64,000 nt of DNA. It comes from Bugula neritina. Taxonomy: Eukaryota; Animalia; Bryozoa. A program made the position numbers and the translations under genes. The stretch is taken from the NCBI GenBank assembly GCA_964035545.1, contig OZ037767.1, positions 8,628,581 through 8,692,580 of the forward strand. The letters run 5' to 3'. Shown here one piece after another: positions 9,064-26,664 of the stretch; within the stretch, counting starts at the first letter, position 1, and every line of letters begins with the position of its first letter. The notes below the pieces were generated by a model. The model ran no database searches, had not been told where the DNA came from, and saw only the letters and a program-made list of their open reading frames with translations.

Positions 9064-12000
9064 TTATAGGAAAGTGTTAGTAAGAGTTCCTATGTTCTGT
9101 AAGTCAATTGTAACTGTGTCTCCAGATTGTAGATATTTTGGTGGGTTGAAACCCTTTGCGGTGCCCCCTGGTGTCCCAGTCAGTATGATATCTCCAGGTA
9201 ACAGAGTGAAAAACCTGCCAAGTATTAGCAATAGTGATTATTTCTACTGAGCTTCTCGACAAGTGAAATAAAAAAACAACATGATTTTTGCAAAGATATA
9301 ATTTGAAAACTGAGAGCATACAACATCAACATAATGTACCAACTGAAGCAGGTAGAATCGTAAAAACAGCTAATATAGTATTTTATGTCAGAGTTGATTT
9401 CAAAATACACTCAAAAGTGAGCAATAAAGCTGAGAGAGAAGACAACTTACCCTGACAAGAAAGATATTATCTGAGGAATTTTAAATATCATCTGATTAGT
9501 GTTACTTTTCTGTCTCACTTCCCCATTCACTTTAGTAGATATGTTCAGGTTGTGTACATCTTCAATCTCGTCCTGAAATTTCCAAGTATTATAATTATGC
9601 GATTCTAATTGTTTCATTTTCCAGTCAAGTACCTATTATCGCATCAAGAGCTAAGTTACAGTTTGATTAAAACACTGATCATATCATGCTAATTTATGGT
9701 TTAAGCAAAAATAATATGTTAATTTGTAATATTAATTTATGTAACTAAGCGGTAAAAGAACATAAAGTCACTAGAAATAAAATGAACAACTTTATTAATT
9801 ACACACAAGGGAAGCTGCATTTTCAGTTAGTTTTACGTATGTCTTGAACACATCTATACAATAATTAGTGTTATACATATTTTTAAATATTAAGTTCAAT
9901 TATGAAATATGTTAAAGTATTTGTGATCAATGTTGTAGTGATGAGTTTACCCAGTGGTCCCCGTGGCGTAATGGTTAGCAAACTTGCTTGCAAGCCAGAA
10001 GTCTCGGATTCGATTCCCAGTGGGGGCAGTTATTTTTCAAATTTGTGTCTCCAAAGTCACACACTTACATACCTTAGTTACGATGTCACTGGATAAAGGA
10101 CAGAAGTTGTCTAAAGATTTGGACAGCAGAAACTGAGCAGCATTCTTTGTACGGCCCATAAGATCACGAGCTGACACATCATTGGCTGCTATGTACCCAA
10201 ATACGTATTCCATTGCATTCTCTTCCTAAACAAAACACACGACTATCTGTTGATGCGGAATAAAGTTGTTAGCTTTATTTTTGTACTTATGGTGACATTT
10301 ACCTGCCATAATGCGGAGAGTTGCTTTCCCTGGTCACAGGCAATATCTTATAATAAAGTATATATCATATGTCTAATTTTGCAACTTGAAATTTAGGTAA
10401 CTCACAAAATGACAAATTTAAATCTTTTTACATTTCATAAAGCAGTTTTGTAATGCCATATTTCATTATTTAACTTCAATTATTGGCTAGATTATATTAT
10501 ATTAATGGTTTTATCAATTTTAAAGACACTTATGTATTTATTTTAACCTTACTGAGCATGCTATAATAATAGGTACAACAAAAAAAGACACCAGATTTGT
10601 TGGTTTAATGCAGTTATTCGTAATTGCATTTAGTATGTTTGACTGAAAGTGAAACTGATTTCATATAAAATATAGCAGTTTTGTTGCATTAACTGCTGCT
10701 ATAAGTTTATAAGTTTGTCACTTGTACCATACCATGTAGATTTGACATTTTGAAAAACGAATAATTATCAAATATTTGCAAGAAATTTAAGTTAACTATC
10801 GTTTAAATTTCATGTTATTCGTTTCAGCGACACACAACAGAAGCTAAAGATGTCTGGGCATTGTGTGATTGAAGTTTAAAAACTTCAACTATATAGCAGT
10901 TTGAGAAATAATCAAAATTTTAGTTGTAAGAAATATACATAATTAAAATCATAGTTTAATTGATAATTAGATATAAGCAAGCATCTTCTCATGTTGATCA
11001 ATAATCACTTAACTTAGTTACTAAATTGTTACTTGAAGACTTTGCTTAAATCTCCTCCGTGATATCAGTACTTTGTATGGCAAAATCGAAATAAAGTTAT
11101 TATATGAATATATACTGTATAACTATAAGACTGACAGTCTCGGAGCCTCTTCTACTGGCAGAAAGTATATATGAATACCAGCTGTTAGTGTGCGCAATAA
11201 TAAACCAACCAAACAGTGGCCATCCTTCAAAGAACCTCTAGTACAATAGAATAATTAATAAACTCTTTAGTCTACCACTTTCACATTTCTGTATCGCAAT
11301 ATGACGAGTGTTTGTAACAAGAGAACTAGGGCTAAACAGAAGTTGAAGGTACCAGTACCAGTATATAATATATATAACCATGTGTTACCTTCACATTCCT
11401 GGCTTTCTTGGCGACCACAACGGCTAACTCACACTCGTAGTCTAAACACTGAAATGAAACCACTGTTGGTGTATATCTATACTTGGCAATAAACAATAAT
11501 ATAATCAAAACATGTACATGGCAAATTAATATGACTTTTAGAAGCTGTCCTTTTGGTAAAACTATAAAATATTTATAATAATAATGTTGGGGGTAATAGT
11601 GTGTAAATACTAGCTTAAAACTTGACATCTCAGTAGTCTCAAAGATCTGACAAAGTTTGAAAATGATCTTTTGTTGCAAAAAGGAAAGACACTATCTGAC
11701 AAATTAAAAGACTGAACATATATCAGATTGTTCATGAAGAAAATAAGTTTTTATAAATACAGCATTCTTCACATGCAGTTTTCAAACATTTAAGCAAACA
11801 GCAAAACCTTTATCCATATGTTTCAATTCTTAAGCTTCAAATACAAATTAACATATTTTTCTTACAAATAATGAGGCTTTAACTTTTTATACAATAATAT
11901 GTAATGTTTTTTACAGACTCACAACACCGACCTTGGTGGCTGAGGGTATAGGGATCTCTCCGGATGTTGTCACACAAGAGGAGAACTTAGCACACAGTAC

Positions 12001-13751
12001 GACTGGATTTGTAGGTATTTCCTCCTTGACTTCTACACAATGATCTTTGTAATTCAGACCAACGACAATAATCTATAAATATAAGTGCACATCATAGCTT
12101 CTTTATACCTAGTATCTCTTTATGGCATAAAACACATCTTTCTATAATATATCTCTATAGCATGGCCTGTGCTCTTGAGTTAAAACTAATACTCTCTTAA
12201 TTTAAACATAAATATAGAATAGTTAAAAAAATTCATCCAAGAAAAATTGCTTTCACAACCTATAAAAATTACACTGCTAAAATATTGGCCAGCTGTTCCT
12301 GTAAAATTACTCATTGCAAGAATATTATTGATGTTATTTGCGATGCAATACAATGTAGTGTAATCCTTTTCAATGCAATACAATATCCGCAATACAATAA
12401 TACAATTTCGCATAACACAACACACATTCCTGTGATTATGTGAAATAAAGGCAAAGCCTTCATGTCTGATAGACATTCAAGACTGAAAGCAACATGACTA
12501 AACTCATAGCTAGATGCCTAAGACATCAATGTTTAAATTGAAGATATCATGCATTGTCATCCATACAACACAATATAATATACAACCACATGATGCAGCA
12601 GGTTGCTATAGAATGCAATATCACACTTAACATAATATAATATAACACTTAACATAATACAATGTCATTCAATATAATATAATATCACATAATACTTAAT
12701 GTAATATAACACAACATGATACAATAACACAACATTAAACAATATACAGTGTAACACAACATAATATAAAATCAAAAAATACAATAAAACAAAACATAAT
12801 ACAATATCACACAATATAATATACTTGGATGCAACACAACATATTACAATATAATAAAATGCAAAGAAATATTACTCATACTTTGCCAGGTTTAGTGATT
12901 GGTGGAAGGAGAGTAACATCATTTACGGATATCTTTTCTGCTGCAGAATCTAGACATCTACAATACCACCACATTATATGTGCTATTCACCAGTGTTTCA
13001 ACATCAATACAAGCCATCCCTAACCACTAGCTAAGATACTACACATAAAACAAGTTCTAAGTCGTAACCAATTTAGCCAAAGTTTCTGAGAGCATTATAA
13101 ACTAAAAAGGAACAGACTTTTTGTAAACTTTCTAACGTTGTCTTTTGGCTCTAAATTATTATGGATTTCAAGTGTAACAAAATAAACTGTATTAAATGGC
13201 ATCAGGGTAGTAAGTACTGACAACTCCAGAAGTCTGGTCCTTGCTGTTGATGGTCTGCTATATAGTCAGGGGAAAACAAATAGTCAGCTGGGAAATCAAT
13301 TGGCCCAGGAAGTTGACATGTGATCTCTATAAGTTGAAGTCTTTGTGAATTCCCAATGATAATATATTTTAAACTAGACTTTTAAAACAAAAATGGTGAC
13401 TATAACTTAAACTGAATTTTTAAAAATAGAATAGGCCTATTAGAAAGCTCTAAAGTCGGAGTCATGACTCCGAGAATACAAAAAGAGAATATTGAAAAAT
13501 TATAATAGATGAGTCATGACAAACCTAGCAGCCTCGGTCAGCAACTTTTTATGGTCCAAGCACAAAGCAGAGCAGACGTCAGTTGGTAAATCTGGAGAGA
13601 AATCATTCAGGTTTAAAATATTTGAGTTGTCTACTCTCACTCCTATGCTGCGCCTACCGGCCTGACTGAACTGTAGAATATGCATCTTCCTTCTGCACAC
13701 TGAGTACGCACAACTTCTATCAGATAACAGCGAGGTTAGTTTAAATAGCAT
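9064..13751 (-). CDS. FAHD2: Fumarylacetoacetate hydrolase domain-containing protein 2-like, copy A (~309 aa)
   Basis: Exons 13751-13525, 12957-12882, 12072-11932, 11448-11389, 10225-10073, 9572-9451, 9214-9064. Motifs [46 protein letters not shown]. Presequence-like N-terminus MLFKLTSLLSDRSCAYSVCRRK. Confidence 0.92.
9934..10037 (+). mobile_element. tRNA-derived short element / tRNA pseudogene, family 1 copy 2 (FAHD2-A intron 5)
   Basis: tRNA-like 9957-10028 with A and B boxes; same leader tgtagtg-tgagtt-acccagtgg and trailing tatttt as the copy at 2830-2931. Confidence 0.7.
12560..12860. repeat. Degenerate pentamer microsatellite (acaat/ataat)n in FAHD2-A intron 2
   Basis: Repeating aatac/aacac/aatat units. 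Confidence 0.6.
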
Positions 13752-15624
13752 CTAACTACAGGTGCTGGTTGGCAGGTCTTTACTTCTAATTGATAGATGC
13801 AGGAAGACTTGAATTTGCTGGTACTTAATATGCCACATGCATCATAACTTATAAGCCTTTTATTCTAGTTACAAACTTGATGTGGCAAAGAGTGAGTTGT
13901 AAAATGACCAACGGCATTTAGAACATCCAGGATTGTACTATATTCTATGCTATATATGTAGTTACAACAGTTACTATATATATAATCAAATAGTTTACTG
14001 AAGTTTACTGGTAACTGATTAAGTATATGGACTTATATAAAATTGAAATTAGCTTTAAAAATTTCATGAAATTAGTTATAGCGCGTGTGCTGTAAAATTC
14101 TAAGCTTAAAGAAGAAATCTTTTAGACACACAAGCTTATGTCAACAAAAGAAGTGTTTTGAAAATTTTCAAGCAGACCGCCAACAAATATTTAATGTAGA
14201 CAAATGCAAAAAATTATGTTTTTGACATATTAGGATGTACCATCATTTTTATTTACAACAGTATCAAAGTATGGAGATAATTTAACTAGAATGATTTCTA
14301 AATTAACTCAAATAAGTTCTGTGAGTTGTCTACTCAAGACTTAGGAACTGTATTGAGTGCCATTTCTCCTGCTGATTTCATTGGTTGATGAGTTGATTTT
14401 GAAACTCATTAAAGTTCTGAGGCAGGAACCTTGCCAGACTTTTACACAATATTGAAAAAGTTATAAATAGGTGTTGCATACAAATTATTGCTTAACGTAG
14501 AAATTAATCATAATATATAGCCTAAAGTAATCTCAACTAGGATAAGAAAGTATGTCCCACAACTGAACAACAAAATGACTAGAAAATGAGAAGCTATAAC
14601 TTTTAGGGTTTTTCTCAGACAGCATTCTGATTCAACATGCTATACAATGTTTTGTAACTTAGAAGATACTTCCAACTAACTGTGAGAAGAGCTGCTTTGT
14701 ATATAAACTACACCATCACCAGCTATAACACACTGCATATGGTATGAAGTGCTAAAAATAAATAAACTACTAGAATACATTATGCAGACTACTAAGTAGT
14801 GTTATTGTAATTACTATATTTGATTTTAATATGCAACAAGAAAATTCATAACATGAAGACTACTTACAGTAGTGGTTAGTTGTGCTGGGCAGCTGGATAG
14901 CTTTTGTTGATAACTAGACACTTTCTACTGTGACACTGCAGGCAGGGTAATCCTTGGGTCTCCTTAATTATTACATAACCCTTTTCAGTTTACATCTATT
15001 TATTTTCAAAGTTGAATTAACTTTTAAGTTATATTATTTGTATAGTCAACAACTGACACTTTATGGCATGCTTAGTTGGGAGTCTTGCTTATTTAATTCC
15101 GGAAAATGTTAAGAAGCCATAGCATGGTAATTATGTATGTATGTTGCTGTGTGGAAACTAATATTTATACTGTACCTAAATGAACTCCTAAGTTGAAAAG
15201 ATAGAAATAGTACTGTACTTTTTATATTGAACTATTATTGTATCCATGGTACATATTATGTAACTTGTTTGTTTTATAGGAAGATTTATGCCCCTTAGAT
15301 CGCAGGCTAACCACATGCACACAGGAGTTATGCCCACGCTGCTAAGATATTGCTAGCAATACTGTTAGTCTAAATATTAGTTAGCAAGGCTTTGCTATCT
15401 TCCTCCAGCTACATGCTATTTTAATATTATAATGGGAATTTTCAAAAATAACGATCATTTAATTTAAGTTTCAACACTTATTTTATTTTAACACAAATAT
15501 GCATCAAAGTCTAATATGGAATGACATTAATGAGCAAAAACTATTTAATTATTTGACAGCTACTTACACTGTATTGCCGTTGATTATAATTGAAAACCTG
15601 GTTTGAAATAGAGAGAGACAGCAT

Positions 15625-15895
15625 GCATGTGTCAGAGAGTAGCTGCATGTGTCAGATAGTAACTGCATGTGTCAGAGAGTAGCTGCATGTGTCAGAGAGT
15701 AGCTGCATGTGTCAGAGAGTAGCTGCATGTGTCAGAGAGTAGCTGCATGTGTCAGAGAGTAGCTGCATGTGTCAGAGAGTAGCTGCATGTGCCAGAGAGT
15801 AGCTGCATGTGTCAGAGAGTAGCTGCATGTGTCAGAGAGTAGCTGCATGTGTCAGAGAGTAGCTGCATGTGTCAGAGAGTAGCTGCATGTGTCAG
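15625..15895. repeat. 20-bp minisatellite x~13.5
   Basis: Near-perfect unit gcatgtgtcagagagtagct. Confidence 0.95.
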
Positions 15896-16734: not shown

Positions 16735-19700
16735 TTATAAGAAAGTGTTAGTAAGAGTTCCTATGTTCTGTAAGTCAATTGTAACTGTGTCTCCAGGTTG
16801 TAGATATTTTGGTGGATTGAAACCCATTCCAGTGCCCCCTGGTGTCCCGGTCAGTATGATATCCCCAGGTGACAGAGTAAAAAACCTACCAAGTTAAAAA
16901 AATATGAAGTAGAGAGCAGATAACTCAAGAGAGAAAGGTGACAACAAAATTGTAAATCTTACAGCAAATGGAGTTATTTAGCTGATAAAACAGTAGCATT
17001 ATGAGAGCTTATTCCTGAATATTTCAAGTGTACTAAGGGAAGACAACTTACCCTGACAAGTAAGATATTAGCTGTGGAATTCTAAATACCAGTTGATTAG
17101 TGTTACTGTTCTGTCTAACTTCCCCATTCACTTTAGTGGATATGTTCAGGTTGTGTACATCTTCAATCTCGTCCTGAAATTCATAAACTTATCCATCAAA
17201 ATGATTTTCATTAAATTTTTACTTTAAACATTGCTAAACTGAAAAAACATTAAAAAACTTAGCAATTCTCAAAAATACTGTCATAAAAAATCTATTTTCT
17301 CTTAAACTATAAATCGTCTAAGATCTAAACTGTGTGTGCTCAATTCTCTGTAATCCATAAAATAAAATGAAACTAAAAATATTTACCTTAGTTACAATGT
17401 CACTGAATAAAGGGCAGAAGTTGTCCATAGATTTGGCTAATAGGAACTGACTACCATTTTTAGTAGCACTGAAAATGTCGCCGGCTGTAAGATCATTGGC
17501 TACGGTGTACCCAAACACATGCTCCATAGCATCAACCTCCTGTATTATCAGACAATAAACAGTTTGACTACATGTTGAAACGTTTATTTTATGCATAATA
17601 AAAATGTAAATCTATTAACGATAATTTACCAAATTTTGAAATAAATTTGTGTGTTTTTTTTATAGTATACAAGGTATAGCTTCTAATTTAGAGAGTTTAT
17701 AACCGCAGGTAAACATGATGACTCTGCTTACAAAACTATAAAAAAACTGATGGACTAGAAAGAATTAGCAAAAAGTAAAGTTTTACTTTCAGAAAAAGGA
17801 TTGAAATAAATATAGTCAAGATATAAACATGCTTAAATAAAACAATACCTTTACATTTCTTGCTTCCTTAGATATAACAACTACCAGTTCACACTCATAG
17901 TCTAACCCCTGAAAGTTTACAGAAACTAGACATAGAGTGCTAACAGTGATATTTGATAATACACAAAACTTCACTATATACTGAGTAGCACATGCTCAAC
18001 TTTGCCCTTTCCCACATCTTGTCTAAACAAATAGTAGACACCATGAATAGGTGCACTTGTTAGTTTAAAATTTTCTGCAGTATTAGCCAACAACTTGCAT
18101 ACACAACTCAAATAGTTGAGGTTCTACAATCTACAGCAAAAGATTAAGTGATGAAACAATCCATGACTCTGTGTTATGTTTTAAACTAGAGTTTGAAGTT
18201 GGACTAATATTTTTATAGTAACTTTGATATTCATCAACTTTAATGCATATAAATAAGTCTCATAAGACAAGTTTTGAAACAGTTTCATGGAGATTTCCTC
18301 CTTATTTAGGCGCGAAAAACATGAAACTACAAAAAAAAAAATCAAAATTTGACTCACTATAATTTATAATGCTGGAAATTTGTTTTAACCAATAGAGGGG
18401 TTTCAAACATCCCTCTAGGGGATTTGTATTTTAAAGTTGTCTCCCCCTACAGGGATTGGGGGCAGTCTCGATGATATTTAGAAGGCCCATAAAATAAGTA
18501 GAAATGTAAGGTTTGAGTGAAGACTACTACTAGTATAAGTTTCATTTTTTCTGAGATTAATATTTTGGCATAAGTACACATATGAGCAGTTTCAGAATTT
18601 TTTTAAAAAATTTTGTTAATGATAAATGGCACAAAAACAAAACTTCAAAGCATATTTGTGGTTTTGGTTAGTGAGCAAATCTGAAGCTGGCAGCTGTCAT
18701 TATCATTTGCTTTGCTGACTGTAACCAGTCTGTTTAGAGCTGCTAACCTTTCAACTCTTAGAACAATAATAACATGCTCGTACACAGTATAGCTGCACTA
18801 GTGGGCTCTGTCTTACTGAACTCCAAATGCTCCAAATTATGGGTTGGAACACATGCCTGTACGTTTATGAAGGCACTGGCTCATTTGTATTGACATGTTC
18901 ACGTACTTACACACCTATACTATGAAAATAACTAAGCCACCCTACTATCTAATATTTCTATATATCAAAAAAATTATTATAAATATAAAGATATGTATTA
19001 AAATAGATAGATTAAATTTGTAATTTCAAACAACATCTTATCTAAAAATGCCAAACACTGTATAACTATATATATGTTTTAAAAGCATTTGTTTACATGG
19101 CATGCCTGCAAGTCAACGAAAATATTTAGAGAACAGTAAAAAGAAGCATATAAATTTCAGAATAGTTTCTTTTTTTCTGAGATGAATATTTTGGAAATGT
19201 CCCACAATTCAACATTTAAATAAAGTCTGTAAAAGAATTTTTCACAGTGTATTTTCAATGAAGAATTATTCTTGCAAGCTGGTTTTCGTTTGTTCTGGCA
19301 TGCCATTTTACAGTGGTCTAGTTAACTAGGTCAAAGTTCATTGAGGTGGACATGTTTTATTAACCTCCGTGTGTTGATGAAATACTATCATTGGATTTAG
19401 AGCTTCTCTAAGCAACTTCACAGTCTGATTAAATATCTGCGATACCTGCCTAGTAGACAATCCAAACTTAGAAAATTAATATACTAAATCCTTGTATTAC
19501 ATGTATGGATGAAAAATAATGCAACAAATTGGCTAAAGCATGTTCAAGTAATGTGAAAAACTCGAAATATAAATGAGTCAAACTAGAGCTAGTCAAGTGT
19601 GTGGTGTTTTTGGCCGATTTATATGTGTTGTTTAATCAGCTTATTATGTAGGGATGTAATCCTATATAATGTAAATTAAGTTAGACAGCTAAAGTTGGAC

Positions 19701-22700
19701 AGTTCTCATTGGGCACTTTCTTGAACAAGCAGTTATGTAATATAGAGAGACAGCTACTCAACAGAGAGCTTCAAGCAAGCAAAATTCTTGCAACAAGGTT
19801 GATTGAATACAAAACAGCTGCTGTTATTCTTATAGCAGCATGCATTGTATAAGAGATAGCCTGATGGTTTACATAGTTTACATACAGTGACATACCACTG
19901 AAAATTATTAGAAACCACAGAAAAGATATAAAGGAGAGAATGCTGGCACAAAGGAAGTATAGCAATGTGGTCAAATATATGGCTGAAAACTGACCTAGAG
20001 ATAAATAAGTACAAAATGTACATAATATAGCTAAATCAGCAAAGCCAAATGATTTGATATAAAAGTATTTTCTGGGAATTTAGTGAAACTTTGTAGCATT
20101 ATTTAAAACTCCACCTTTGAGCAAGACCCGTATGAAGTAAAGCCAATCTTAATTTCATTAGTGTCATAAGAATGCAGTCATTATGACATAGTTCGTTCTT
20201 TCTATACTTTACAGCTGGTACTAAATGTACATTTCAACTCTTTTTTAGAAACAAGCCAAGTTGCTTTGGTTGAAAAGTGCTTTTTTTGATGATTTTTTTG
20301 CAATGCAGCAGTATATAATTTACAATGCTCCAAAAATATTTCTGTATTAGGAATGTTGGTATACAAACAGCTTGCAAGAATAATTCTTCATTGAAAATAC
20401 ACTTTGAATTTTTTTTACAGACTTAATTTAAATGTTGAATTGTGGGACCTTTCCAAAATATTCATCTCAGAAAAGAAGAAACTATTCTAAAATTTATATG
20501 CTTCTTTTTACTGTTCTCTAAATATTTTTATTGACTTGCATGCATGCCATGTAAACAAATGCTTTTAAAACATATATATAGTTATACAGTGTCAGACATT
20601 TTTAGATAAGATGTTGTTTGAAATTACAAATTTAATCTATCTATTTTAATACATATCTTTATATTTATAATAATTTTTTTGATATATAGAAATATTAGAT
20701 AGTAGGGTGGCTTAGTTATTTTCATAGTATAGGTGTGTAAGTACGTGAACATGTTAATACAAATGAGCCAGTGCCTTCATAAACGTACAGGCATGTGTTC
20801 CAACCCATAATTTGGAGCATTTGGAGTTCAGTAAGACAGAGCCCACTAGTGCAGCTATACTGTGTACTAGCATGTTATTATTGTCCTAAGAGTTGAAAGG
20901 TTAGCAGCTCTAAACAGACTGGTTACAGTCAGCAAAGCAAATAATAATGACAGCTGCCAGCTTCAGATTTGCTCACTAACCAAAACCACAAATATGCTTT
21001 GAAGTTTTGTTTTTCGTGCTATTTATCATTAACAAAATTTTTTAAAAAAATTCTGAAACTGCTCATATGTGTATTTATGCCAAAATATTAATCTCAGAAA
21101 AAATGAAACTTATACTAGTAGTAGTCTTCACTCAAACCTTACATTTCTACTTATTTTATGGGCCTTCTATATATCATCGAGACTGCCCCCAATCCCTGTA
21201 GGGGGAGACAACTTTAAAATACAAATCCCCTTGAGAGATGTCTGAAAACCCTCTATTATAAAACATAAAAAATACAAGTTAAATGGTGGTACGATCACTT
21301 TTTAAAAAAATCACTTTCTAAGATATTTTCAAGCAACAATGCTTTCTTACCAACTATTTATCTTTTCACATACTTCAATTGCATATTGACACTTTTAAAT
21401 TCCACTAACGATGTATTTCTTTATGTTAAAACTACTTTCTTGATTATCTCTGAAAATAAAGCTGCTTAAAATGATCAAATGAAAATGACCTTCACTAATT
21501 GCTATATATTATGTTTTAAGCTAGTAAACCTCATGTACTTTGGCACAGCACCCACCTTGGTAGCTGAGGGTATCTGAATATCTCCAGAGCCAGTAACACA
21601 GCTGGAAAACTTACTAAAGACGATAGGTTCTGTTGGCAGAGGCTCGCCTAAATCCGCGCAAAGGTCTTTGTAGTTCAAGCCAATTCCTATAATCTAAAAG
21701 TTTCACTCGTTACAGTCTTCAATAGTTAGAAAGATGAACATAGATTTTAGGCTCAGACTAAAACTGACTTTCAGAATGTCACAAAAATATTAAACTAGCA
21801 ATAATCAATATGTTCAGAGTAAAATTATCATAGTGATTGAGTAATACCATATAACAGCAGCAGCACTTTACCTTTCCTGGGTTGGTGATTGGAGGATGCA
21901 GCGTAACATCATCAACAGATATTCTACTGGCTGTGGACTCCAAGCATCTGAAATTTAAGCAATGGCCTGTCATAATCACTACCAAATATATAGTTATATA
22001 GTTATACCAAAATTGTTGTAAAGTCAGACATCAGGAATAGCATGTAGTTATTGTAATGTTAATATATTATATACCAGTATAAACTTTTTCATTACAATTA
22101 CAATACAATTGCCATTGATAAAAGTTATAAGAAATCTGCATCTAGCTACTGGCATATCAAGCTCATCGGCCTAAATCTTGAAAGAAGTACAAACAATAAT
22201 TTCAAAAACAACACCTAATAATATTAGCATTGCATCCAATCTTTAGGTTGAATTTATGCTACTTTACTTGTCAGTTGTCTAGTATTTTGCAAGCTAGTAA
22301 ATTTATCTATTCAATTTAATAATATATTTACAGTTACAAAATATAGATAAAGTCATAAACAGCAATTTTGAATTCCAGCTTGGTTTTACTTTTAGTTTTT
22401 CCACTAATATTTCAAAAACTGATTTTAATTAAATAAATTATTGTTGATTATATTATTATTTATTGGTGATAAAATATTTAATTCATTGTGATTAATTTTA
22501 AGTATTTTATATTTTAAAACTAATACTAATACTAATACTAATAGTAATAGTAATACTAATACTAATAGAACCTGGCAGCCTCGGTCAGCAACTTGTTGTG
22601 GTCTAAACACAAAGCAGAGCAGACGTCAGTTGGTAAATCTGGAGAGAAATCATTCAGATTTATAATATTTGTGTCGTCCACTCTCACTCCTATGCTGTGC

Positions 22701-22732
22701 CTACCAGCCTGACTGAACTGTAGAATATGCAT
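16735..22732 (-). CDS. FAHD2: FAHD2-like copy B (~286 aa from the second Met); presequence lost, catalytic residues altered
   Basis: Exons 22732-22572, 21947-21872, 21693-21556, 17908-17849, 17539-17387, 17173-17052, 16885-16735. No stop or frameshift from MHILQF onward and all splice sites intact. Lid reads NYKDLCAD; NDLTAGD replaces NDLTARD. Confidence 0.8.
18394..21254. mobile_element. Foldback-type non-autonomous DNA transposon, 2861 bp, ~888-bp inverted arms, in FAHD2-B intron 3
   Basis: Arm 18394-19281 is the reverse complement of 20368-21254 with only scattered mismatches; 1086-bp non-coding spacer. Absent from the paralogous intron of copy C (empty site accaattata near 25091-25100). 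Confidence 0.9.
22520..22567. repeat. (taatac/taatag)n microsatellite next to the FAHD2-B exon 1 donor
   Basis: About 8 hexamers; not expanded at the same site in copy C. Confidence 0.8.
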
Positions 22733-23532
22733 CTTCCTTCTTCACACTGAGTGCGCACAACTTCTATCAGATAACAGCGAGGACCACCCTCATAACTATT
22801 TCAGCTAATCATACCATTATAAGTTGTGTGAGTTGTCTCCTCAAGACTCAAGAACTGTATTGAGTGCCATTTCTCCTGCTAATTTCATTAGTTGATGAGT
22901 TGATTTTGAAATTCATTGAAGTGCTGACGCGGGGACCTTGCCAGACTTTTACACATTACAAAACCTCCTTTGAAATACACAGAGAGTGCATGCATGTTGA
23001 ACAGTTTTTCAGCATCAAGAATCTTTTTAAACTGACAGCAGCTCATAACACCATACTGGTCATCCTGATAATGCTGACGATAGTATAAATATACAATTTG
23101 GAATAAAATTTGCCATTGTTTTTGATTTACAACTAAAGGCTTTCAATGTGAATGCAAAAATTACTCAGCAGTTTTCATTATAAATAAAAGCAAAACATAC
23201 TTAAACCTGGTGAAATTATTAGTCTAAGAAAGTTGAAAGAACTCCCTAAGTATTATTAAATACACAAGTGATTGCTTCAAATAGCATTTTACTTCTACTT
23301 TGGCTGTCATTATTTGCTGAGCCAGAGCTTTGTATTATGATTTTAAAGGTTTCTAACTGCTGGTACTAAACGTTAAGCAAAAGTAGAAATATATGAGAAT
23401 ATAAATACAGTAATATTTTTTATTTAATTTGAACTAACAAGCTAAAGTAGGACACATGCTATTATGCTAGAGGACCTGCACATCCTTACTACACACAGCA
23501 ACTATTACATATAGCATAGAAACCAGCATATC

Positions 23533-26500
23533 TTATAAGAAAGTGTTAGTAAGAGTCCCTACATTCTGTAAGTCAATTGTAACTGTGTCTCCAGATTGTA
23601 TGTATTTTGGTGGATTGAAACCCATTCCAGTGCCCCCTGGTGTCCCAGTCAGTATAATATCTCCAGGTGATAGAGTAAACAACCTACCAAGTTAGAAAAC
23701 ATGAAGTAGAAAGCAGATAACGCTAGAGAAAAAAAGACAATAAAGTTGTAAATCTTACAGCAAACGACTTTATTTTGCTGATAAAACAGTAGCAATATAA
23801 AGGAGTTTATTCCTGAACATTTAAGGTTGCTGAGGAAAGACAACTTACCCTGACAAGTAAGATATTAGTTGTGGAATTCTAAATACTAGTTGATCAGTGT
23901 TACTTTTCTGTCTCACTTCCCCATTCACTTTAGTGGATATGTTCAGGTTGTGTACATCTTCAATCTCGTCCTGAAATTCATAAACTTATCCATCAAGTTG
24001 GGTTTTATTAACTTTTCACTTTAAACATTGCTGAACTGAAAACACATTAAAAAAACTTGGTAAATTGCGAAAATTGTGTCAAAAAAGATCTAGTTTTTTC
24101 TGAAACTCTAAGCAGTCTAAGATCTAAACTGTGTGAAATCAAATCTCTGTAATCCCCAAAAGAAACTAAAACTATTTACCTTAGTTACAATGTCGCTGAA
24201 TAAAGGGCAGAATTTGTCCATAGATTTGGCTAATAAGAACTGACCACCATTTTTAGTAGCACTGACCATGTCACGGGCTGTAAGATCATTGGCTACGGTG
24301 TACCCAAACACATGCTCCATAGCATCAACTTCCTGTATTATTAACTTGCAGTTGTGTTATCTCATAGTATACAAGGTATAACTGATAATTCAGAGAGTTC
24401 ATGACTGCAGGTTAAATATTTCCTATCACATGGTTGCTGTGTTTGTAGAGCTATAAAAACTGGCAGACTAGAAGGAGCTTGCAAAAAATGAAGCTTTACT
24501 GCCAAAGAAAAGATTGAAATAAATGTAGTCAAGATATAAACATGCTTAGATAAAACAATACCTTTACATTTCTTCCTTCTTTAGATATAACAACCACCAG
24601 TTCACACTCATAGTCTAACCCCTGAAAGTTTACAGAAACTAGACATAATGTGTCAAAAGTGACATCTGATGATACACAAAACTTCACTATATACTGAGTA
24701 GCACATGCACAACTCTGGTCTTTGCGACATATTGTCTAAACAAACTGTAGACACCATGAACAGGTGCACTTGTTAGTTTAAAATTTTCTGCAGTATTAGC
24801 CAACAACTTGCATACACAACTCAAATAATTGAGGTTCTACAGCTAAAGATTAAGAGATGAAACAATCCATGACTCTGTGCTATGCTTTGAACTAGAGTTT
24901 GAAGTTGGACTAATATTTTTATAGTAACTTTGATATTTATCAACTTTAATGCATATAAATAAGTCTCATAAGACAAGTTTTGAAACAGTTTCATGGAGAT
25001 TTCTTCCTTTTCTTAGGAACGAAAAACATGAAACTATAGAAAAATCAAAATTTGACTCACTATAATTTATAATGCTGGAAATTTGTTTCAACCAATTATA
25101 AAACATAAAAAATACAAGTTAAATGGTGGTATGTTCAATTTTTTTTTTAAAAATCACTTTCTAAGATATTTTCAAGCAACAATGCTTTCTTATCAACTAT
25201 TTATTTTTTCACATACTTCAATTGCATATTGACACTTTTAAATTTCATTAATGATGTGTTTCATTATGTTAAAACTACTTAGTTGATTGTATTTACAGCT
25301 TACAGTACCTTATCTCTGAAAACAAAAGCGACTTTAAATGATCCAATAAAAATAAACATCACTTAAAGTTATCCAATGTGACGCAAGCTAGTAAATCTCA
25401 TGTACTTTGTCACAACACCCACCTTGGTAGCTGACGGTATCTGAATATCTCCAGAGCCAGTAACACAGCTGGAAAACTTACTAAAGACGAGAGGTTCTGT
25501 TGGCAGAGGCTTTCCCACCTCCTCACAATGATCTTTGTAGTTCAAGCCAATTCCTATAATCTAAAATTTTCATACATTACAGTCTCCAGTAGTTGGACAG
25601 ATGAACATAGATTTTAGGCTCAGACTGAAATTGACCTTCAGAATGTCGCAAAAGAATAAAACTAACAATAATTAATATATTAAGAGTAAAATAATCATAG
25701 TGATTGAGTAATACCATATAACATAGGCAGCACTTTACCTTTCCTGGGTTGGTGATTGAAGGATGCAGCGTAACATCATCAACAGATATTCTACTGGCTG
25801 TGGACTGCAAGCATCTGAAATTTAAGCAATGGCCAGTCATAATCACTACTAAATATATAGTTATATGATTATATCATAATTGTTGTGAAGTCAGACATCA
25901 GGAATAGCATGTAGTTATTGTAATGTTAATATATTATATACCAGTATAAACTTTTTCATTTATAATACAATGCAATTGGTAAAAGTTATAAGAAATCTGC
26001 ATCTAGCATATCAAGCTCATCAGCCTAAATCTTGAGCAAGTTACAAAGAACAATTTTAAAAGCAACAACTAATACTATTAGGCTTAGCATTAACTCCAAT
26101 CTTTAGTTCAAATTTATGCTACTTTATTTGTCTAGTATTTTGCAAGCTATTAAATTTAATATTATATTTACAGTTAGAAAACATAGATAAAAAGCAATGT
26201 TGAACTCCAGCTTAGTTTTAGCTTTTTCACTACTACTTTAAAAATTGATTTTAATTAAATGAATTATTATTGATTATATTAGTATTTATTGGTGATAAAA
26301 TATTTAATTCATTGTGATTAACTTCAAGTATTTTATATTTTATAACTAATAGAACCTGGCAGCCTCGGTCAGCAACTTGTTGTGGTCTAAACACAAAGCA
26401 GAGCAGACGTCTGTTGGTAAATCTGGAGAGAAATCATTCAGGTTTATAATATTTGAGTCGTCTACTCTCACTCCTATGCTGTGTCTACCGGCCTGACTGA

Positions 26501-26594
26501 ACTGTAGAATATGCATCTTCCTTCTGCACACTGAGTACGCACAACTGCTATCAGATAACAGCGAGGTTAGTTTAAACAGTAGGACCGCCCTCAT
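23533..26594 (-). CDS. FAHD2: FAHD2-like copy C (~312 aa)
   Basis: Exons 26594-26356, 25814-25739, 25560-25423, 24621-24562, 24332-24180, 23970-23849, 23683-23533. Intact GLNYKDHCEE, DYECEL, NDLTARD, TGTPGG. Presequence-like MRAVLLFKLTSLLSDSSCAYSVCRRK. Confidence 0.93.
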
Positions 26595-26664
26595 AACTAT
26601 TTCAGCTAATCATACCATTATGATTGTGAACTATATATAACTTAGTATATACAATTATTTTTAT

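Follow-up and report, generated by a model that had tools for sequence, protein, structure and literature searches.

A probable pseudoenzyme-like FAHD2 paralogue in Bugula neritina, with two active-site islands kept distinct amid gene conversion between tandem copies

We consider a window of 64,000 nucleotides of AT-rich animal DNA from the bryozoan Bugula neritina (assembly GCA_964035545.1, contig OZ037767.1, positions 8,628,581 to 8,692,580 of the forward strand; genome size 216 Mb), in which positions are counted from the first letter. The window carries three FAA_hydrolase genes in tandem on the minus strand, transcribed in the order C, B, A, and their nearest database proteins are labeled 'FAHD2A [Bugula neritina]'. 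The subject of this paper is the middle gene, B. The reading that we favor, with moderate confidence, is that B is an old and still-constrained B-type FAHD2 paralogue, pseudoenzyme-like, that has stayed distinct despite gene conversion between neighbours. Comparison of the predicted proteins shows that the B-type lost the lid His (the general base), the pocket Arg and a conserved Gly before three Bugula lineages split, while retaining the Glu-x-Glu...Asp metal site and the catalytic Lys.

Gene B (16735..22732, minus strand) has seven coding exons: E1 22732-22572, E2 21947-21872, E3 21693-21556, E4 17908-17849, E5 17539-17387, E6 17173-17052 and E7 16885-16735. They add up to 861 nt, or 286 codons and a stop, with AG/GT (GT-AG) at every junction. 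The exon limits rest on splice sites and on what A, B and C conserve in common, and the exons were searched singly, the proteins P0269, P0003 and P0152 serving as full-length stand-ins; joined models were used for translation and codon counts only.

The two islands that distinguish B from C lie in exons 3 and 5. The lid island of exon 3 (21643..21666, minus strand) reads DLCADLGE in B and DHCEEVGK in C, that is, His90>Leu, Glu92>Ala, Val94>Leu, Lys96>Glu and, at the Glu of the catalytic dyad, Glu93>Asp. The pocket island of exon 5 (17471..17485, minus strand) reads AGDIF in B and ARDMV in C, that is, Arg165>Gly, Met167>Ile and Val168>Phe, with Gly175>Ser/Asn close by. Exon 3 has 11 mismatches in 138 positions, nine of them inside the 24 nt of the lid island and two elsewhere, and our recount thus agrees with the figures of the initial annotation of this window. 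When the 47 coding differences between B and C are permuted over 858 nt, a scan statistic gives p ~6e-5 for nine differences in 20 nt. Exon 5 has 9 mismatches in 153 positions, four of them inside the pocket island. The same annotation had presented these as a second cluster: the change of ARDMV into AGDIF is there, but four differences in 12 nt are, on their own, insignificant as a positional cluster between B and C (p 0.26), and the weight of this island comes from orthologues instead.

To call B "otherwise near-identical" to C, as was done earlier, is an overstatement. The two genes differ at 47 of 861 coding nucleotides and at 21 amino acids, the proteins being ~92% identical; the synonymous divergence (dS) is 0.147 and the non-synonymous divergence (dN) 0.032. 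Since this dS is comparable to the 13% divergence of the introns, the exons of B are no more alike to those of C than neutral sequence. In the islands, synonymous and non-synonymous changes are each about ten times denser (synonymous differences, Sd, 5 over 7.8 sites; non-synonymous differences, Nd, 8 over 31 sites). That both classes are denser suggests a historical or mutational cause, and not selection on amino acids alone.

The history can be read in related lineages, whose DNA was reached through single-exon searches. We label G the present genome, with copies B, C and A; N the NCBI B. neritina assembly GCA_010799875.2; and J a set of JGI (Joint Genome Institute) metagenome contigs. A word search with exon 3 of B alone returned one 45-aa fragment, which led to the lineage J contig L001; a word search with exon 5 alone gave no match. 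A pattern scan of metagenome DNA for the flank of E3 had 0 hits, although L001 contains the pattern; records close to the genome seem to be excluded from that scan. In lineage N, a 168-kb contig holds the 3' end of a C-type gene, followed by the B-type gene NB (P0269 = KAF6031563.1), the A-type gene NA (P0152) and a seven-transmembrane (7TM) gene, so that the tandem order C-B-A is found there on one contig; a 30-kb contig holds NC (P0003), a C-type gene whose upstream flank matches that of C, and two Logan contigs share 99.8% identity with NC. In lineage J, contig L006 carries the B-type gene JB from E3 to E7, and L001 the C-type gene JC over E3-E4. The contigs of lineage J differ by 6-7% from lineage N, and dS between lineages G and N is ~0.17-0.19. 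P0269 is 56% identical to the FAHD2 of Watersipora.

The lid reads DLCAEVGE in JB and DLCEEVGE in NB, and the pocket reads ASDIF in both; NC has the same lid and pocket as C, and JC, within its two exons, the same lid. Six differences are fixed between the B-type and the C-type: His90>Leu, Lys96>Glu, the loss of Arg165, Met167>Ile, Val168>Phe and the loss of Gly175. Because these core differences separate every B-type gene from every C-type gene, the B-type active site predates the split of the three lineages. Around this core, Ala92 is common to B and JB, Arg165 is replaced by Gly in B but by Ser in the other two B-type genes, and both Glu93>Asp and Val94>Leu are private to the B gene of this genome, the dyad Glu being still Glu in NB and JB. 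Of the motifs DLCAD and AGD, whose conservation in relatives had been proposed as a check, the Leu and the loss of Arg are shared, but the Asp and the Gly occur only here.

The islands might, on the other hand, have arisen recently by mutational accident, whether as a multi-nucleotide event, through template switching or by micro-conversion from some other member of the FAH family. The raised density of both classes of change would fit such an event, as would the two adjacent codons that changed on the terminal B branch. The core changes common to NB and JB already contradict a recent origin, and we regard this explanation as highly improbable. Allowing up to 3 mismatches, a search for the 22-mer of the B lid found no further copy, either in the window or elsewhere in the 216-Mb genome, and no template for the lid of at least 10 nt, direct or inverted, lies within 3 kb. 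Elsewhere the genome has three more FAH-family loci, namely a FAHD1-like gene whose open exon spans 161 aa (C1:1182668-1183147), a degenerate copy with stops on a small contig (C51:35630-36266) and a true fumarylacetoacetase (C3:7448224-7448457); all three are too different to be the donor of the islands. Micro-conversion and template switch were rejected, since no donor was found and the states shared by orthologues contradict them.

The residues hit by the islands are well conserved elsewhere. In an alignment of 44 FAHD2-like proteins (A1), consisting of 43 relatives and the B-type P0269, the lid His is present in 38 of the relatives, a Glu at His+3 in 42 and the pocket Arg in 40; the columns of the metal ligands and of the catalytic Lys (E156, E158, D187 and K207) are invariant, and Glu92>Ala falls in a variable column. 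Compared exon by exon with solved structures of the FAH family, the C-type His and Glu align with the motif G-L-N-Y-x-D-H-x-x-E and the Arg with N-D-x-T-A-R-D. In FAHD1, H30 and E33 form the catalytic dyad of the lid (PMC8398924; PMC7116474), the catalytic centre comprises G24, R25, H30, E33, K47, E71, E73, D102, Q109 and K123 (PMC7056447), and R106 hydrogen-bonds E73 and Q109, holding the pocket together (PMC7116474). The dyad is replaced by Leu and Asp in B, and by Leu and Glu in NB and JB; the Arg of the N-D-x-[ST]-A-R-D motif, equivalent to R106, has given way to Gly in B and to Ser in the other two B-types. The lid His-x-x-Glu that the initial annotation named as the catalytic dyad is indeed disrupted in B. 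Its Glu corresponds to the second E of DHCEE, where B has Asp, and not to the site of the Glu to Ala change; nor does the binding of the substrate carboxylate that the annotation attributed to the Arg match the FAHD1 literature, where this residue is described as a scaffold of the pocket bonding E73 and Q109 (PMC7116474). Its statement that the splice sites, the reading frame, the TGTP motif, the AKSMD Lys and the ligands of the metal (DYECE, ND) are retained in B holds in our gene model of 286 codons. Since A and C both keep the DHCxE lid and the ARD motif, with their His, Glu and Arg, the state of B is derived.

A further peculiarity concerns bryozoan FAHD2 in general. At positions 193-194 of P0269, the bryozoan proteins seen (the A- and C-types of Bugula, Watersipora and two more) have Met/Leu followed by Val/Leu/Met, as opposed to the Trp-Gln of most animals, whose Gln corresponds to Q109 of FAHD1; even the canonical bryozoan pocket is thus unusual.

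If B is still constrained, its substitutions should tell. The ratio omega of dN to dS is 0.20 between B and NB, 0.25 between B and JB, and 0.27 between NB and JB; it is 0.10 between C and NC, and 0.12 between A and NA. Substitutions unique to B are informative for selection since conversion cannot import them: there are 7 non-synonymous and 11 synonymous ones, which departs from neutrality with p 5e-4, and the corresponding counts for C are 5 and 13. We then separated the 36 codons of the pocket (83-97 and 163-183) from the rest of the protein, and computed for each part the ratio pN/pS of the proportions of non-synonymous and synonymous differences. Between B and NB it is 0.52 in the pocket and 0.15 in the rest; between B and JB, 0.89 and 0.19; between NB and JB, 0.26 and 0.29. 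The canonical pairs give 0.00 in the pocket and 0.15 in the rest for C and NC, and 0.08 and 0.14 for A and NA. No frameshift, stop or loss of a splice site is found in any of the three B-type genes B, NB and JB. These ratios show B-type genes that are as constrained as their canonical neighbours outside the pocket, and that evolve almost freely inside it.

The simplest reading of this contrast is that the fold would still be needed and that the catalytic pocket has been released from constraint. B presents two traits of pseudoenzymes: the loss of a catalytic residue, here His to Leu, and purifying selection, visible in the 7:11 count and in the pN/pS of 0.15 outside the pocket. We would then expect the B-type no longer to perform the canonical His-dependent chemistry of FAHD proteins, and to be retained, as a pseudoenzyme-like or a low-specificity ligand-binding paralogue, because its fold, its metal site or its dimer surface is required for some role.

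A rather improbable alternative is that the B-type is enzymatically active but catalyses an altered reaction or works on another substrate, its remodelled lid and pocket being adaptive and selection blocking conversion from C to B. Several observations speak for it: the core B-type changes are fixed in three lineages; codons 91-94 of NB are C-like while the neighbouring Leu codon is retained; and the metal site and the Lys are intact. Moreover, the joint loss of His and Arg is known from arthropods. In two Daphnia proteins (P0189 and P0228), the lid reads D-T-C-K-E and the pocket T-A-L-D-W-H, a state conserved between the two species; these proteins and a FAHD2-like protein of the beetle Exocentrus (P0172) have all lost the lid His, the pocket Arg and the Gln equivalent to Q109 of FAHD1, and all three begin right at M-x-x-V-Q-F, without a presequence. 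However, the B-type pocket varies between close lineages, with the alternatives Gly/Ser, Ser/Asn/Tyr, Phe/Tyr/His, Ser/Asn, Glu/Ala, Glu/Asp, Gly/Cys and Leu/Trp, and its pN/pS of ~0.3-0.9, not above 1, resembles relaxation more than a settled new site.

The pseudoenzyme-like reading also has to account for the survival of the islands next to sequences that homogenize each other. Across E2 and intron 2, a single one of 253 nt distinguishes NB from NC, followed by 5 of 60 nt at the lid (p 0.001); the two genes also diverge more in exon 5 (12 of 153 nt) than in the introns beside it (18 of 528; p 0.025). Between JB and JC there are 13 substitutions in 1098 nt, nine of them in or beside the lid (7 in exon 3 and 2 just upstream in intron 2), and the final ~730 nt, spanning intron 3 and E4, have none. 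In the middle of intron 3, B and C differ by ~5% and NB and NC by ~19%, and C groups with the B-types; introns 4-5 display the opposite pattern, NC grouping with the B-types. Informative intron sites split 21:21:5 between orthology, within-genome grouping and the third grouping. Such a mosaic of pairwise distances requires independent conversions in each lineage. It shows that the tandem copies overwrite each other repeatedly by gene conversion, independently per lineage, and that conversion tracts crossing the two active-site patches were not retained; this is why the patches stand out as islands with old synonymous differences. Mosaic relatedness and the same differences kept across lineages are both found, as expected of islands protected by selection under interlocus conversion. 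The initial annotation had proposed an old divergent active site surviving conversion, as opposed to random decay; the core changes in NB and JB, the mosaic and the omega of 0.20 between B and NB all support it. Substitutions absent from relatives and a dN/dS of about 1, which would have spoken for decay, are not what we observe.

Conversion also reaches the third gene, over a longer time scale: E1, E6 and E7 of A have a dS of ~0.2 to B and C, and E2-E5 a dS above 2, which is saturated. The first three are ~93% identical to those of B and C, yet the neighbouring introns are unalignable, a pattern that suggests conversion limited to exons. In lineage N, E1 of the A-type gene is 95.0% identical to E1 of B and 91.7% identical to E1 of A.

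The B gene of this genome bears lesions of its own. Upstream of its MHILQF start, a broken N-terminal extension (22742..22793, minus strand) begins at an ATG at 22793; a 17-nt deletion and a change of TGC to TGA at 22744-22742 leave only an upstream open reading frame (uORF) of 8 codons, which ends at the TGA at 22769-22767. The extension is open in C (ATG 26594, 26517-26594), in A (ATG 13751, 13686-13751), in P0269 and in P0003. The FAHD2 of Watersipora (P0009) has a presequence at the same place, as does human FAHD2 by published prediction (PMC7116474). The extension is likely a mitochondrial presequence, and B does not have the presequence that precedes the M-[RH]-[IL]-[LV]-Q-F start in mitochondrial FAHD2. 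Having lost it in this genome, B would yield a protein that starts at MHILQF and probably resides outside mitochondria. Intron 3 of B contains a foldback mobile element of 2.9 kb (18393..21255, no strand assigned), whose arms of 905 bp (18381-19284 and 20365-21265) share 96.6% identity; neither C nor any copy in the related lineages carries it. A genome search with one arm gave at least 354 candidate copies. Forty of them were scored, at 96-99% identity, often as inverted pairs ~2 kb apart; given this identity, the family looks young, high-copy and recently active.

As to expression, read contigs were compared over 21400-26600 only, which covers E1-E3 of B and all of C. Two RNA-like runs of a related lineage contain a spliced C-type contig on C, at a depth of ~380, and A-type fragments; they contain no B-type transcript, with nothing on exon 3 of B and no B-type contig on exon 3 of C, and such contigs show presence, not absence, as rare transcripts can be missed. 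A DNA run covers the B lid without a listed variant, and may be the source sample of the assembly.

It is natural to ask whether the B gene of this genome is becoming a pseudogene, silent or untranslated, and looking intact only through recent conversion from C. The destroyed presequence and the new uORF, the young element in intron 3, the two private changes Glu93>Asp and Val94>Leu, and the lack of a B-type contig in the two RNA-like runs all go in this direction. We nevertheless find it unlikely: conversion cannot create the unique substitutions of B, whose 7:11 count is near the 5:13 of C, the open reading frame and all 12 splice sites are intact, and the B-type is intact in two further lineages.

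Other considerations weaken the case for a constrained pseudoenzyme-like paralogue, besides the lesions (presequence, uORF, dyad Glu to Asp, transposon in intron 3) and the RNA-like runs just described. Several tracts run from B-type into C-type genes, and purifying selection on C alone can explain the rejection of such tracts across the islands; since selection on canonical C would suffice, the survival of the islands is no proof that the residues of B are themselves selected. We infer the loss of activity from the literature on FAHD1, and the Daphnia site, conserved without His and Arg, hints that such sites can be functional enzymes. Finally, the lineage J contigs come from short-read metagenome assemblies and are possibly chimeric across identical stretches, and the assembly of lineage N has indel errors.

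The assignment of B to its family raises fewer questions. Searched singly against the Pfam family FAA_hydrolase, E5, E6 and E7 of B score 38.9, 36.1 and 53.1 bits, and E3 scores 22.1, slightly below the cut-off of 23.9; a six-frame search also gave FAA_hydrolase matches, and the orthologue P0269 matches with 220 bits (2.8e-65). The domain match, the metal ligands and the Lys all place B in the FAH superfamily (PF01557). Canonical gene C (23533..26594, minus strand) is colinear with B, with exons 26516-26356, 25814-25739, 25560-25423, 24621-24562, 24332-24180, 23970-23849 and 23683-23533; its frame is open over 286 codons, each junction shows AG/GT, and its upstream ATG adds an extension of 26 residues. 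Gene A, an old canonical paralogue (9064..13751, minus strand), has an open frame of 287 codons in seven exons (13685-13525, 12957-12882, 12072-11932, 11448-11389, 10225-10073, 9572-9451 and 9214-9064), with AG/GT at every junction. The spacer between B and A contains a tandem repeat with a period of ~60 nt (15612-15895 of the window; self-matches 95-97%). In lineage N, the C-type gene lacks a single nucleotide at three places in E6 and E7 where every other copy has one (L009 12735-13169, VXIV02000129.1); these deletions are probably assembly errors and lead to the truncated 236-aa annotation P0003. The lineage N sequence L011 (748-18375) has a spacer of ~9 kb between C and B, against 0.8 kb here, and an intron 1 of the B-type gene of ~8 kb, against 0.6 kb; large lineage-specific insertions thus surround the B-type gene in lineage N.

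B joins several known kinds: paralogues of the FAH family, pseudoenzyme-like relaxation and conversion-resistant islands. With animal FAHD2 and FAHD1 (PF01557; oxaloacetate decarboxylase/tautomerase, acylpyruvase), it has in common the full-length two-domain architecture, the metal ligands, the Lys and the GTP motif; the B-type differs from them by the lid His turned to Leu, the Arg to Gly or Ser and the conserved Gly to Ser or Asn, and the B of this genome also by the dyad Glu turned to Asp and the missing presequence. With pseudoenzymes, it shares the loss of a key catalytic residue, purifying selection elsewhere and a relaxed active site, but its intact metal site and Lys leave room for residual or new chemistry. 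The GOT1 paralogues of Tigriopus californicus (PMC3728101) are likewise tandem and mosaic, with short exon patches that differ between homogenized flanks and introns; in Bugula, the islands coincide with known catalytic positions and are replicated in three lineages, and the state protected in one copy is the loss of catalytic residues.

The Daphnia and beetle proteins resemble B in the joint loss of His and Arg and, for the B of this genome, in the missing presequence. They have independent origins and other replacement residues (Thr, Leu and His in Daphnia), and while two Daphnia species conserve the site, the pocket of the Bugula B-type varies. One may speculate, as a doubtful extension, that the B-type is a case of a recurrent and unnamed class of invertebrate FAHD2 proteins, characterized by the joint loss of His and Arg and often of the presequence. 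Its members would either have a non-canonical activity of their own or play a regulatory part outside mitochondria, and in Bugula selection against conversion tracts would keep the class separate from its canonical neighbour.

FAHD2 is a poorly understood family of mitochondrial enzymes. Standing beside a canonical copy that is ~92% identical, B offers a natural swap pair for the roles of the lid His and the pocket Arg. The locus also documents, in three lineages, the persistence of active-site islands under recurrent conversion, and it may be useful for teaching and for calibrating methods that detect selection in tandem families. The independent joint loss of His and Arg in Daphnia and in a beetle suggests that the pattern may be general.

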